Positions 56,392 to 60,981 of a DNA stretch of 64,000 bases are shown here, piece by piece (the stretch's first letter is position 1; every line of letters starts with the position of its first letter). The DNA is from Macrostomum lignano (Eukaryota). The stretch is taken from NCBI GenBank assembly GCA_002269645.1, contig NIVC01001021.1:186001-250000 (forward strand), written 5' to 3'. A program made the translations under genes and the position numbers. The notes below the pieces were generated by a model. The model was given only the letters and a program-made list of their open reading frames with translations, was not told the origin of the DNA and made no database searches.

Positions 56392-56965
56392 CAACAACAA
56401 CAAGCTACGCCCCAGGGTTGATGTTGGCCTTGGGCGTCATAGGTTGCGCCTCAGAGCACGGGAGTGGAAAAAGGTTGGTCTACTGGCCTGGTTGGGGGCA
56501 CCAGCATCGGCCAACAGGCAGTCTGGATACCACCAAGTGCGTGCTTGCCCTTGCCAGAAGGGCGCTGGGAGCGCCAGCAGCAGCGTCTCCTGCGCCGGCT
56601 TGGGGCAGTACGCCTCAGCGTGGATAAGGTGGCCTGCTAGCTGGAGCTGCCAGTGGCAAAGCAGATCGCTGGGGTGGGCCAGGCAAGCTCGGGTGTATAG
56701 TGCCGCGTTGGTGACATGCTCACCACTGCCGATCTTGAAGTCAGCCTGCAGCAGGCTGGCGTTCGTCGCGTCAACCTGTTGCTCGAGTGTCTCTGTCAGC
56801 GTACATGTTTTAGCGTTGTAGAGCAGGATGGTCTCAATCACTGCCTGGAAAAACGCCAAGCGCTGGTGGTCTGGCAGGGTTGCAGAGTGCAGGATGGTCC
56901 TCATAGAGTTGAAGGCTGCCCAAGCGAGTCCATAGCAGGTTGTCAAAGGCGTCAAAGGCAAAATC
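56392..56965 (-). mobile_element. 5'-truncated RTE/L2-like LINE with (TTG)n tail and 10-bp TSD
   Basis: AWAAFNSMRTIL...FFQAVIETILLYNAKT...LQLAGHLI; (caa)n at 56392-56403 on +; tttcaaattt at 56382-56391 and 56966-56975. Confidence 0.85.
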
Positions 56966-57212
56966 TTTCAAATTTAGTAGTCTCTTATTATTTGCATTGC
57001 AACTTTGGTATGTAATTTAGATAGTATTTGTTTTTTGTACTTTTTGATATGATTACAAATTACTATAACAATAATAGTTGCTTAAAAATAATATTTTAAT
57101 TAAAATATTGATAGTTAGCAATAGTGTTAACCATTATTTAAAGGTTGATCACTTTCTTAAAAGAATTATAACCATGCTTGGGCACAACCTAGGAATTCAC
57201 TGGGCTGTTTCT

Positions 57213-57281
57213 ATTGGCAATGCATACACATGTAAGTTGCTATTGGACAGAATAGTAGTCACGTGACTGCTTTTAGCCAAT
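57213..57281. promoter_or_regulatory. CCAAT boxes + palindromic E-box/CLEAR element (AGTCACGTGACT)
   Basis: ATTGG at 57213-57217 and 57242-57246, AGTCACGTGACT at 57257-57268, CCAAT at 57277-57281. Motif evidence only. Confidence 0.5.
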
Positions 57282-59121
57282 AGTGACTTAAGAGTAGCTT
57301 AAATTATTTATTGAATAAAGATAGGCCTAAGAACAATAAGCCAACTTAATATCTTTATGCTTTTTTATTCTTGTAATGCATTTGCATTGTATGTTTTATT
57401 TTAATATTATTTAAGGCCTATCTTTGAATTTGATTGCCTAAAGGTCATAGTCAGGAAGTTGTCCTATACTATTTACTAGAATTTTCTGGTATGCATTAGC
57501 CCTTTATAGTTTATTGGCATATATATTTGGCATGCTTGAATCTTCAAAAGTTATGCTTGTATCTTTTTTGTAAGTATCTATCAGTTTCTATAGGATAACA
57601 AAAGTAGAACATTTCAAAGTAAAAAAGTAGGCAATTAATGTGTTAAAAGATAATTAAAGTGCAAAAAAATTAATTGAATATGATAGTACTATTTCAAAGA
57701 ATTTAAATAATAAAACTTTGTCTAATTGCATATTCTTATAAAGAAATAATAGACACAACACTTATTTTGTTATGTTGTACATATAAATGTCAAATATAGC
57801 AACAAAAAAGGTCTTTTATTATTGCAATGCAAAAGTAAAATCTCAAAATTTTGAAATTTTTGGCATGCACATGCATAAAAGTCATATTTCCTATTTTTGG
57901 CATACTTGGTGTATGCCTTAATTTTTGCCCAAAAAACTCTAGTACATACTGGACACCTTGGCAGTGGCCTTTGCCTTAGGATGATATAGAATCATACCCT
58001 TAAAGATATTATTCATGCCAGAATTTTTAAAAGGGTATACAATTGGTTTGACATATAGCATATACATTTTGTTCTGGCATAAATTCTAGTATGTATTTAA
58101 CATGATCTTAAATAACTAAATATGGATATTGCTAATTGTAAAAATTTCAATTAGGATCCTATGACTTTCCTATATGTATTCAAAAGCAAAAATGCTAGTT
58201 ATTCAGTTATTGAGAAAAACTTTTTTTTTTAATTTTTGGCTTTTATTGCAATGTCAAAGATAATAACAAACTATTACATTCTCAAAAATAATTGCAAAAA
58301 ACTGTCACACTTACAAAAAGGTATTTTTATATTTTAAATATTGAAAAAAAATTATCTAAGTTCTAGCATAACATGTCAAAATTATTATTATTATATTAAG
58401 CTATATTCAAAATTTTGACAAGTTTTCATTATTTTTTTGCTTTTTTAACATATTAACTTTGTTGCTCCTAGTTAAGAAACAAATATAATATGCTAAATTT
58501 CATTTACTACTAGAGTAAAAGTTAATAGTATTATTTCAAGTGCAAAAATTAGAAAATGTTTTCTATTTCCTCCCCATGCAGTTTAGGCCTAAGACTGACT
58601 TTAAGCATTGTTGCAAAGGTTTTGGCTATTCTAGCTGTATTATATTTAAGGCATAAGGCATAAAAATGCTAAAATGACTTTAGGCATAGAAATTAGTTAA
58701 CTAAAAAGTTAATCAAAATATTAGCTGAAAATTTTAGCAAAATGATCATAGTGCTTGCTTAAGAGACAAAACTAAAGCCTTTGAGTTTTATTAATAAATT
58801 ATAATAAACAATAACAAAATCATTTTTTGTTTATTATCAAAACAGCTATCACCAAAGGCTTCAGTCTTTATCTAAATGATTAATCTATATAATAATAAAT
58901 AAAATAACATTAGGCATAATAACCTTGTTACACTTGTTACAATTTGGCTTATTATTATTCTTGAATTGGTCTCAATCTTGAACTTTTAAGTAACCTCAGC
59001 TGAGCTCAGCTTTTTCATAAATAAAAATTTAAAATATTGCATGTGTTTCACTAGCATATTCAGACAAGGCAATTTAAAAAAAAATATTATTAGTTTAATT
59101 TAAACAACTAATTAAAAGCAA

Positions 59122-60981
59122 ATGGCCGCAATTCGCAAAAAGCTTGTCATTGTTGGCGATGGTGCTTGTGGCAAGACCTGCTTGCTGATTGTATTTAGCA
59201 AGGACCAGTTCCCTGAGGTCTACGTGCCCACTGTGTTTGAGAACTATGTGGCCGACATTGAAGTCGATGGCAAACAGGTGATTTTGGAAACAAAAAATAC
59301 TCAGTACCTGTACTTAACACCCACCTGTCTTTTATGACTCTCTCCCTCTATGACTTTCCTCTTTCCCCTTTATGACTCTTTCCCTCTATTACTCTCCCCT
59401 TTCCCTCTATGACTCTCTTTCCCTCTATGACTCTCTCTTCCCCTCTATTACTCTCCCCTTTCCCTCTATGACTCTCTTCCCTCTATTACTCTCCCCTTTC
59501 CCTCTATGACTCTCTCTTTCCCTCTATTACCCTCCCCTTTCCCTCTATGACTCTCTCTTTCCCTCTATTACCCTCCCCTTTCCCTCTATGACTCTCTCTT
59601 TCCCCTATTACTCTCCCCTTTCCCTCTATGACTCTCTCTTTCCCCTATTACTCTCCCCTTTCCCTCTATGACTCTCTCTTTCCCTCTATTACTCTCCCCT
59701 TTCCCTCTATGACTCTCTCTTCCCCTCTATTACTCTCCTCTTTCCCTCTATTACTCTTCCCCTATGACTCTCCTCTTTCCCTCTATGACTCTTATGCTTT
59801 CAACTTTCACCTATGCGATTCCTCTATTAATTAAATGCTATTCTCATGCGCAGGTTGAGCTCGCCCTATGGGACACGGCCGGTCAAGAAGATTACGATCG
59901 CCTGCGGCCCCTGTCTTATCCAGACACGGACGTTATCCTGATGTGCTTCGCGATAGACTCGCCAGACTCGCTAGAGAACATCCCGGAGAAATGGACGCCA
60001 GAAGTGAAGCACTTCTGCCCGAATGTGCCCATCATCCTGGTTGGCAATAAAAAGGATTTGCGCAACGACGAGAAGACTCGACACGAGTTGGCTAAGATGA
60101 GGCAGGAGCTGGTCAAGCCTGAGGACGGCCGGGCCATGGCAGAGCGAATCGGTGAGACTTACTGCCCTGCTGTCCTAATCTCAGATTCCAGATTCTCAAT
60201 TGAGTCCATCTGGAAATCCTAGATCCTCAAATGAGTCCATCTGGAAATCCTAGATCCTCAATTGAGTCCATCTGGAAATCCCAGATCCTCAATTGAGTCC
60301 ATCTGGAAATCCCAGATTCTCAATTGAGTCCATCTGGAAATCCCAGATCTTCAATTGAGTCCATCTAGATATCCCAGATCCTCAATTGAGTCCATCTGGA
60401 AATCCCAGATCTTCAATTGAGTCCATCTGGAAATCCCAGATCTTCAATTGAGTCCATCTGGAAATCCCAGATCTTCAATTGAGTCCATCTGGAAATCCTA
60501 GATCTTCAATTGAGTCCATCTAGATATCCCAGATCCTCAATTGAGTCCATCTGGAAATCCTAGATCTTCAATTGAGTCCATCTGGAAATCCCAGATCCTC
60601 AATTGAGTCCATCTGGAAATCCCAGATCTTCAATTGAGTCCATCTGGAAATCCTAGATCTTCAATTGAGTCCATCTAGATATCCCAGATCCTCAGTTGAA
60701 TCCCTATGACAGTCCCAGATCCTCAGTTGAGTCCATCTGGCAACCGCAGTCTCAGGTCCTCAATTCTATCTATCTAATAAATCCGGATCCTCATGCCCAG
60801 TTGCCTCTAATAAACAAAGCATGAGCATCGCCCCGCTCTGTACTGTGATGCAGGCGCCAGCTCCTACATCGAGTGCTCCGCCAAGACCAAGGACGGCGTT
60901 CGCGAAGTATTCGAAACCGCCACCAGGGCCGCTCTGCAGACGCGCAAGAAGAGGAACAAGCTGCCCTGCGACATGCTCTGA
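59122..60981 (+). CDS. RHOA: Rho GTPase RhoA/Rho1, 3 coding exons, 193 aa
   Basis: join(59122-59277, 59854-60151, 60854-60981). [57 protein letters not shown], polybasic tail and CaaX CDML. Confidence 0.98.
59330..59790. repeat. CT-rich ~20/41-bp minisatellite in RhoA intron
   Basis: ccctctatgactctctcttt / ccctctattactctccccttt alternate. Confidence 0.9.
60185..60735. repeat. 31-bp minisatellite in RhoA intron
   Basis: ctcaattgagtccatctggaaatcccagatc. Confidence 0.95.

Follow-up and report, generated by a model that had tools for sequence, protein, structure and literature searches.

Why does the DNA directly upstream of a Rho GTPase gene hold a single CpG dinucleotide, and why does that CpG stand at the centre of a palindromic E-box between CCAAT boxes? 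The question is raised by the 5′ flank of RhoA in the flatworm Macrostomum lignano, within a stretch of 64,000 nucleotides (referred to here as the window, with positions counted from its first letter) of contig NIVC01001021.1 (its positions 186001–250000), which belongs to the Mlig_3_7 assembly, GCA_002269645.1 (PMC5730564). An earlier note on this DNA, made by reading the letters, had proposed that the block is a long-methylated domain in which one factor-bound CpG was retained, and that this CpG marks a functional RhoA promoter or enhancer. The analysis described here leads to a partly different answer, which is considered probable though well short of secure: the block is a desert of hypermutable CpGs to the left of RhoA, likely produced by germline methylation, and the lone E-box CpG may have been protected or selected.

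A CpG desert in the 5′ flank of RhoA

The block and its borders have the following coordinates; o/e denotes the ratio of observed to expected dinucleotides, and L005 is a homeologous copy of the locus on another contig.

56437–56961, minus strand: retroelement fragment, as judged by homology, with an open 174-codon reading frame, 5′-truncated at about 56950; left border of the desert
56952–59121, no strand: CpG desert, 5′ flank of RhoA; AT-rich (26% GC), unique and non-coding
59122–59277, plus strand: RhoA exon 1, CpG o/e 0.64
59854–60151, plus strand: RhoA exon 2, CpG o/e 1.02, 100% identical to L005
60854–60981, plus strand: RhoA exon 3 with the stop codon, CpG o/e 1.07, 100% identical to L005

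Between 56952 and 59126 (2,175 bp, GC content 25.8%) the sole CG is that at 57262–57263, against 36.2 predicted from the C and G content, which corresponds to an o/e of 0.028. The earlier note had counted one CG with about 30 expected by a rough estimate, and the computation bears this out. Up to the last nucleotide before the start codon (56952–59121) one CpG is present versus 35.9 expected, and the two bases are balanced (C = 275, G = 283). The Poisson probability of encountering at most one CpG is 7e-15, or 4e-9 with the o/e of the whole window, 0.62, as baseline. Related dinucleotides are plentiful: GC occurs 84 times (GpC o/e 2.3), TG 125 times and CA 127 times. TG and CA together were expected about 207 times, and their excess of approximately 45 matches a CpG deficit of approximately 35.

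The desert is an outlier within the window. The longest CpG-free gap of the whole 64 kb extends to the right of the lone CpG, from 57263 to 59127 (1,865 bp). Thirteen of the 14 other long CpG-free gaps listed fall within tandem-repeat arrays, which are mostly strand-skewed and nearly devoid of C or G, the remainder being built from a repeat unit that lacks CpG. AT-rich DNA outside satellites retains its CpGs elsewhere in the window, as had been asserted by eye, with an o/e of 1.04 at 45001–46000 and 0.76 at 61001–62300. The observation of a CpG desert is thus confirmed.

The open reading frame (ORF) listing contains no frame longer than 62 aa inside it; no match to Rfam families, tRNA genes or phage sequences was obtained, no repeat family was detected within it, and no further copies besides the homeologs were encountered in the ∼190 kb of M. 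lignano DNA sampled. The fragment on its left has 16 homologs, matched in the region just C-terminal of the reverse-transcriptase domain. Since in several of these that domain (Pfam PF00078, RVT_1) precedes the matched region on its N-terminal side, the fragment is identified, on homology, as a 5′-truncated retroelement tail; a Pfam scan of the flanking ORFs gave no match for it, and its identity came from the homology search. The fragment retains CpGs (o/e 0.6), yet it is losing them, and it occupies the same place in L005 (∼6390–6936) and in a further homeologous copy, L006.

The right border of the desert is the RhoA start codon. The spliced coding sequence consists of three exons and specifies a Rho protein of 193 aa, identical to M. 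lignano BOX15_Mlig005898g1/g2; the exact protein is present on three contigs. The introns are nearly all minisatellite (59338–59792 and 60188–60740), with a copy number that varies between homeologs. Exon 1 differs from L005 at three synonymous positions, two of which are CpG transitions. Exons 2 and 3 contain many synonymous NCG codons. The block is the unique, non-coding RhoA 5′ flank and most likely accommodates the promoter together with an outron or 5′ intron.

Deserts at homeologous and paralogous Rho loci

L005 and L006, located on two further contigs, carry the same RhoA gene preceded by a matching upstream block and the retroelement fragment. The two are ∼99.6–99.9% identical at the substitution level and ∼98% identical over the BLAST alignment including gaps, and the window desert differs from them by 3–7% substitutions. 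In the sequence that they share with the window, L005 and L006 have only two CpG sites: the E-box CpG and a site at L005 7252. The latter reads CG in L005, TG in L006 and CA in the window, as deamination of an ancestral CpG on either strand would be expected to produce. The remaining L005 CpGs (7348, 7948 and 8170–8383) sit in DNA missing from the window copy, namely the right arm of an inverted repeat, which has been deleted, and a 575-bp insert (L005 7833–8408, L006 7830–8405).

Two groups of Rho paralogs were also retrieved, L002–L004, whose protein is 93% identical, and L008/L009, which are syntenic with the RhoA locus through a shared downstream intermediate-filament gene. Both groups have AT-rich deserts of 1.5–5 kb directly upstream of the ATG, and no nucleotide similarity was detected between these and the window block. 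The pooled deserts of the Rho loci show a CpG o/e of 0.02–0.03, a GpC o/e of 1.7–2.3 and a TC/GA o/e of 0.7–0.8. As the GpC excess, and likewise the TC/GA deficit, also mark AT-rich DNA that keeps its CpGs, CpG loss is the only desert-specific trait. A state track in 250-bp steps resolves two CpG states with sharp transitions. Copy-specific inserts with CpGs of their own break up the homeologous and paralogous deserts (the L005 and L006 insert mentioned above and L009 ∼6001–8500), as would be expected if new insertions arrive CpG-rich. No desert was observed upstream of other genes in these loci, a glycosyltransferase and a TRP channel. Within the ∼200 kb of genome sampled, deserts form a common compartment and are no special property of the RhoA promoter.

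Some additional features of these loci deserve mention. In two paralog groups (L005, L006, L007, L008 and L009; for example L007 16032–21860) an intermediate-filament/lamin-tail gene lies downstream of Rho, a conserved order that fits the whole-genome duplication reported for M. lignano. The copy of the filament gene in the window holds a CpG-free tandem repeat of 3.8 kb. Intron 1 of L002 contains a minisatellite with a CpG in its unit (ctgcacCGgtccca); depending on the repeat and on the copy, this dinucleotide reads CG, CA or TG.

CpG turnover between copies

The fate of CpGs in deserts and in CpG-normal DNA was compared in six pairs of homeologs. In one of them, L007 versus L005, the desert class is mostly a 3.8-kb satellite and includes three CpG sites only. 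Across the other five pairs, 55–79% of desert CpGs are not shared between homeologs, as opposed to 3–13% in CpG-normal DNA, and the unshared sites mostly alternate with TG or CA. Divergence outside CpGs amounts to 0.8–4.3% in deserts and 0.8–1.3% in CpG-normal DNA. The window's own desert offers two comparable CpG sites only, of which one has been lost and one kept. When L004 is used as an outgroup, ancestral desert CpGs were lost on the terminal branches of L002 and L003 at 3 of 5 sites, versus 2 of 62 in normal DNA, both being small counts; gain of CpG at TG or CA sites took place in 2 of 405 cases, and all of these figures agree in direction. Divergence estimates for the right part of the window desert were taken from BLAST alignments.

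The retroelement fragment at the left border shows CpG decay under way. Between the window and L005 it has accumulated 61 substitutions in 515 bp (12% divergence), consisting of 58 transitions and 3 transversions. A CpG origin is indicated for 38 of the transitions, among them those at six sites where one copy has TG and the other CA; of approximately 45 CpG sites, both copies preserve 13. By comparison, the DNA situated 1–3 kb further upstream (54160–55777 and the fibrinogen-like gene) displays 1.6% divergence and has kept 54 of 58 and 53 of 58 CpGs. Judged from this turnover, the comparison of copies shows CpG to be currently hypermutable in deserts. The identity of RhoA exons 2 and 3 suggests either gene conversion or exclusion of these exons from the hypermutable domain.

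After removal of TG/CA double decays of CpG, the surplus of non-CpG transitions that the retroelement fragment had shown at CWG fell to a marginal level: 11 of 85 CWG sites are affected compared with 8 of 164 CHH sites (p = 0.04). This lean towards CWG could be a hint of non-CpG methylation or could be due to chance. The retroelement ORF has stayed open in each of the two homeologous copies, and its indels, of 3 and 6 nt, preserve the frame. Its interpretation as a conserved gene was rejected: the substitutions are distributed 28/8/25 over codon positions 1/2/3, and many of them change the amino acid.

The E-box and its inverted repeat

The lone CpG of the window desert belongs to a symmetrical arrangement of motifs.

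57184–57246, plus strand: left arm of an inverted repeat, decayed, with two CTATTGG motifs (inverted CCAAT) at 57211 and 57240
57257–57268, no strand: palindromic E-box AGTCACGTGACT, central to the inverted repeat, with the desert's only CpG at 57262–57263
57277–57290, plus strand: what is left of the right arm, with CCAATAG; in the window copy the remainder of this arm is deleted

The positions noted earlier are accurate: ATTGG at 57242–57246 ends 10 nt to the left of the E-box and CCAAT at 57277–57281 begins 8 nt to its right, and a third motif, ATTGG, lies at 57213. The CLEAR decamer GTCACGTGAC is exact in the window (57258–57267). L005 (7264) and L006 (7261) share the CACGTG core and its CpG with the window, so that all three copies have kept them. 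In the two homeologs the E-box reads ATCACGTGAC and its 5′ flank A-TCACGTGAC; the core TCACGTGA is retained, the first decamer position is an A and the outer G of GTCACGTGAC is lost. Both left motifs are conserved as well. The right one is not: it reads GTCAATAG, with TCAAT in place of CCAAT.

The symmetry of the arrangement has a structural origin. In L005 the E-box is central to an inverted repeat with two 60-nt arms (7190–7249 and 7289–7348) that are 85% complementary and separated by a 39-nt spacer; the region is predicted to fold as a DNA hairpin (z = −6.2). The left arm in the window (57184–57246) is homologous to L005 7190–7249, and L005 and L006 keep the full right arm. The left pair of CTATTGG motifs and the right CCAATAG mirror each other in the two arms. 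The CCAAT/E-box/CCAAT trio is symmetric because it represents the remains of an inverted repeat of ∼160 bp. CCAAT boxes are, besides, hardly enriched: six are observed in the desert in either orientation versus 4.9 expected, and the occurrence of three within 75 bp is marginal (p ∼0.05).

A point in favour of protection concerns the E-box itself. In three independent deserts upstream of Rho genes, 3 of 28 CpGs lie in CACGTG, compared with 0.53% expected from TG/CA precursors (p = 4.5e-4), and the excess persists when the discovery case is left out (2 of 27, p ∼0.009, binomial). One of these CACGTG sites is shared by all three copies within its group. CpG methylation blocks the binding of basic helix–loop–helix leucine zipper (bHLH-ZIP) factors at CACGTG. 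The E-box CpG may persist because a methylation-sensitive factor of this class (USF, Myc/Max or MiT-TFE type) keeps it unmethylated, or as a result of selection, and a protected binding site is suggested tentatively.

Like the E-boxes recognized by bHLH-ZIP factors, including the MiT-TFE CLEAR site, the window copy has the exact decamer and the homeologs keep the core and its CpG; a lone unmutated CpG in a decaying domain is what would be expected of an occupied, unmethylated site. Unlike CLEAR targets, which have copies of the motif near the start of lysosomal or autophagy genes, the locus has a single candidate site, which lies 1.86 kb upstream of the start codon of a Rho GTPase gene, with no promoter-proximal cluster and an outer base that is unconserved. 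Animal promoters that combine NF-Y and E-box sites likewise contain CCAAT pentamers at close quarters, three in the window (extended to CCAATAG) within 70 bp at spacings of ∼30–35 bp. Here, however, two of the CCAATs are mirrored by the inverted repeat, the pentamer on the right is TCAAT in L005 and L006, and the clustering is near chance. No CCAAT/E-box module was detected upstream of the other Rho paralog groups, and TCACGTGA is absent there.

The proximal block and a candidate splice acceptor

If signals for RhoA expression are sought, the DNA closest to the gene appears more promising.

58575–59121, plus strand: proximal block, 18 substitutions in 528 aligned bp (3.4%) between copies
59117–59118, plus strand: AG of a candidate splice or spliced-leader (SL) trans-splice acceptor, 3 nt upstream of the ATG (aaaAG/caaATG)

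The adjoining segment, 57581–58574, shows 63 substitutions in 975 bp (6.5%) as against 3.4% in the proximal block (Fisher p = 0.012), and the three copies show no difference over the final ∼40 bp ahead of the ATG (TTATTAGTTT...AAAAGCAA). On this pattern of divergence, the proximal ∼550 bp is a better candidate for functional 5′ signals than the E-box region.

In M. lignano ∼30–39% of genes are trans-spliced to a 35-nt SL which ends in ATG, and the acceptor conforms to YTNCAG (PMC5730564, PMC8629364). The AG in front of RhoA is conserved in L005 and L006, and the paralogs have comparable sites, tattatAG/ATG in L002 and gttgcAG/cATG in L008, so that in each of the three Rho groups an AG precedes the ATG by 0–3 nt. 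This fits the earlier suggestion of a 5′-untranslated-region intron or trans-splice acceptor. The locus resembles SL trans-spliced flatworm genes in having the AG just before the ATG and departs from them in that AAAAG deviates from the YTNCAG motif; the ATG supplied by the SL would be in frame (ATG-CAA-ATG). An SL trans-splice or 5′-intron acceptor is plausible on these grounds and, if this reading is right, much of the desert would be outron.

Probable germline methylation and competing explanations

The process that would most readily generate these deserts is dense CpG methylation of desert-class DNA in the germ line. 5-Methylcytosine (5mC) deaminates to T, and this conversion would drive CpG to a very low equilibrium, at an o/e of ∼0.03. 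Such an equilibrium requires that CpGs be lost ∼30 times faster than they are gained, and the homeolog counts give that order of magnitude. The sharp left edge would have arisen because the inserted retroelement brought a CpG-rich composition which is now decaying by C-to-T transitions, and the right edge would be set by the start of the coding exon. DNMT1 and DNMT3 are reported to persist in M. lignano, together with a low level of 5mC whose regional distribution is undescribed (PMC9246332, PMC11292947, PMC10658182). From the sequence evidence combined with this published retention, we infer dense germline methylation, with DNMT1 and DNMT3 as the likely agents and methylation as the most likely cause. 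The methylated domain proposed in the earlier note gains indirect support from the excess of TpG and CpA, the CA/CG/TG site and the fast turnover of CpGs, all of them signs of deamination-type loss read from sequence.

The deserts resemble germline-methylated, CpG-depleted DNA elsewhere, such as the bulk of vertebrate genomes and the low-o/e compartments of mosaic invertebrate ones, in combining a CpG deficit with a TpG/CpA excess, in the raised frequency of CpG transitions between copies, in bimodal o/e states with sharp borders and in the reported presence of DNMT1 and DNMT3. They differ from the vertebrate bulk in a depletion that is far deeper (o/e 0.02–0.03 versus ∼0.2) and in that methylation is deduced here from base composition and substitutions. 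Typical invertebrates, in turn, have depleted gene bodies, exons included; here an AT-rich non-coding flank is depleted and exons of the same gene are at an o/e of ∼1.

A number of observations weigh against methylation and a protected E-box. Global 5mC in adults is reported to be low (PMC11292947). RhoA exons 2 and 3 have a CpG o/e of ∼1.0 and are identical between homeologs, which implies that the hypermutable domain is not simply the whole transcription unit, unless the exons were recently gene-converted. Deserts diverge 2–3 times faster than CpG-normal DNA at non-CpG sites as well, and part of their divergence could stem from gene conversion or from a mutation rate that differs generally. 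The polarized counts of CpG loss are small (3/5 versus 2/62). As for the E-box, 20–45% of desert CpGs survive comparable divergence, so that the conservation of the window's CpG is not significant on its own, and the surrounding 57201–57300, with 6.8% substitutions, is conserved no better than the rest of the desert.

Some of these points are turned to advantage by a compositional explanation, according to which the deserts are without present-day methylation and represent either a methylation fossil or an AT-rich equilibrium that escapes GC-biased gene conversion, while CpG-normal DNA is kept rich in GC and CpG and homogenized by conversion between homeologs. Such a state would account for CpG-normal DNA being 2–3 times less diverged than deserts at non-CpG sites, for exons 2 and 3 being identical between copies whose flanks differ by 3–7%, and for a GpC excess and TC/GA deficit that are present in AT-rich DNA with or without CpGs; the low adult 5mC is also in its favour (PMC11292947). 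It is nevertheless regarded as unlikely: desert CpGs continue to be lost preferentially, the retroelement at the edge is losing its CpGs now with an extreme transition bias, the borders are insertion junctions and exon edges, unlike those of recombination tracts, and the o/e of 0.03 demands the ∼30-fold excess of loss over gain. A foreign, multicopy-transposon or artefactual origin, in which the block would be intrinsically CpG-free, is very improbable. A composition sharply unlike that of the neighbouring DNA speaks for it, but three independent contigs present the block in the same gene context, non-homologous deserts with a matching signature flank the paralogs, and neither coding capacity, nor an RNA family or phage similarity, nor extra copies in the sampled DNA were detected.

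Two further explanations concern the E-box rather than the desert, and both are given limited credence. The promoter hypothesis, under which the CCAAT/E-box/CCAAT cluster would act on RhoA as a promoter or enhancer of NF-Y plus USF/TFEB type, with its CpG maintained through selection or occupancy in a methylated domain, draws on the presence of the E-box CpG and the TCACGTGA core in three homeologous copies, on the over-representation of CACGTG among desert CpGs and on a distance of 1.86 kb from the ATG, given that ∼2 kb of upstream DNA sufficed for other M. lignano reporters (PMC5730564). The conservation of the E-box CpG supports this part of the earlier note. The CCAAT layout has proved to be that of an inverted repeat that has lost most of its right arm in the window, its right CCAAT is replaced in the homeologs, the local divergence of 6.8% exceeds the 3.4% of the proximal 550 bp, and the paralogous Rho genes have no comparable module, with the number and clustering of CCAATs near chance. 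A link to TFEB or CLEAR amounts to pure motif matching, and the outer CLEAR G is lost in the homeologs. The case for a RhoA promoter with an NF-Y/USF/TFEB module is, as far as these motifs go, weak, and nothing ties the persistence of the E-box CpG specifically to RhoA transcription. Improbable to a similar degree is the converse proposal, that the inverted repeat is a foldback element resembling a miniature inverted-repeat transposable element, or a local inverted duplication, and that the E-box is an accident of the palindrome, its CpG being the last to go. The 60-nt arms in L005 and L006, the central E-box and the strong predicted hairpin agree with this proposal; the centre of a perfect palindrome is always self-complementary, and some CpG must be the last in a decaying domain. 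Against it, no target-site duplication was recognized, and no second copy of the element is present in ∼190 kb of M. lignano DNA, a sample far too small for that purpose; the independent CACGTG excess in other deserts argues against a pure accident.

Other features of the window

The 64-kb window is crowded with long minisatellites, most of them strand-skewed (66 rows in the Tandem Repeats Finder output). Examples are situated at 3089–4849, 6754–8000, 11238–12646, 13450–15125, 17150–18776, 22033–23144, 36044–36869 and 62364–63286. The coding content includes:

82–1020: open 312-aa ORF for a mariner/Tc1-type transposase (Transposase_1, HTH_32, DDE_3)
30483–30944, minus strand: ORF over a 36-bp tandem repeat (30499–30821), with a start resembling a signal peptide
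39496–40752, minus strand: intronless 418-aa ceramide-glucosyltransferase-like gene (Glyco_transf_21), with CpG-normal flanks and no upstream desert

The ORF at 30483–30944 encodes three copies of FVQPGTYDW between KR or KKR dibasic sites; beyond these copies the repeat gradually loses the reading frame. Judged by its translation, it looks like a multi-copy neuropeptide precursor.

Implications for the methylation landscape of M. lignano

At the level of this locus the outcome is a modest one: a striking signature that had appeared to belong to the RhoA promoter comes down largely to a property that the genome shows in general, together with a decayed palindrome. The finding is best placed among the examples of methylation-type CpG depletion, as one unusually deep and unusually situated, with a tentative indication that E-box CpGs are spared. 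A broader and rather doubtful extension would be that M. lignano possesses a partly inverted mosaic methylome. AT-rich unique flanks, outrons and introns would be methylated to near-zero CpG, exons and much of the repeat DNA would be unmethylated, CACGTG CpGs would be shielded by bHLH-ZIP factors and lone CpGs would mark occupied sites.

If the deserts are methylated domains, sequence alone would map where germline methylation has acted in the past, and the resulting map would be unlike the usual gene-body pattern of invertebrates. M. lignano is a flatworm model that retains DNMT1 and DNMT3 and is amenable to transgenesis. The rare CpGs that survive in its deserts would then serve as cheap pointers to factor-bound sites, testable by existing reporter technology.

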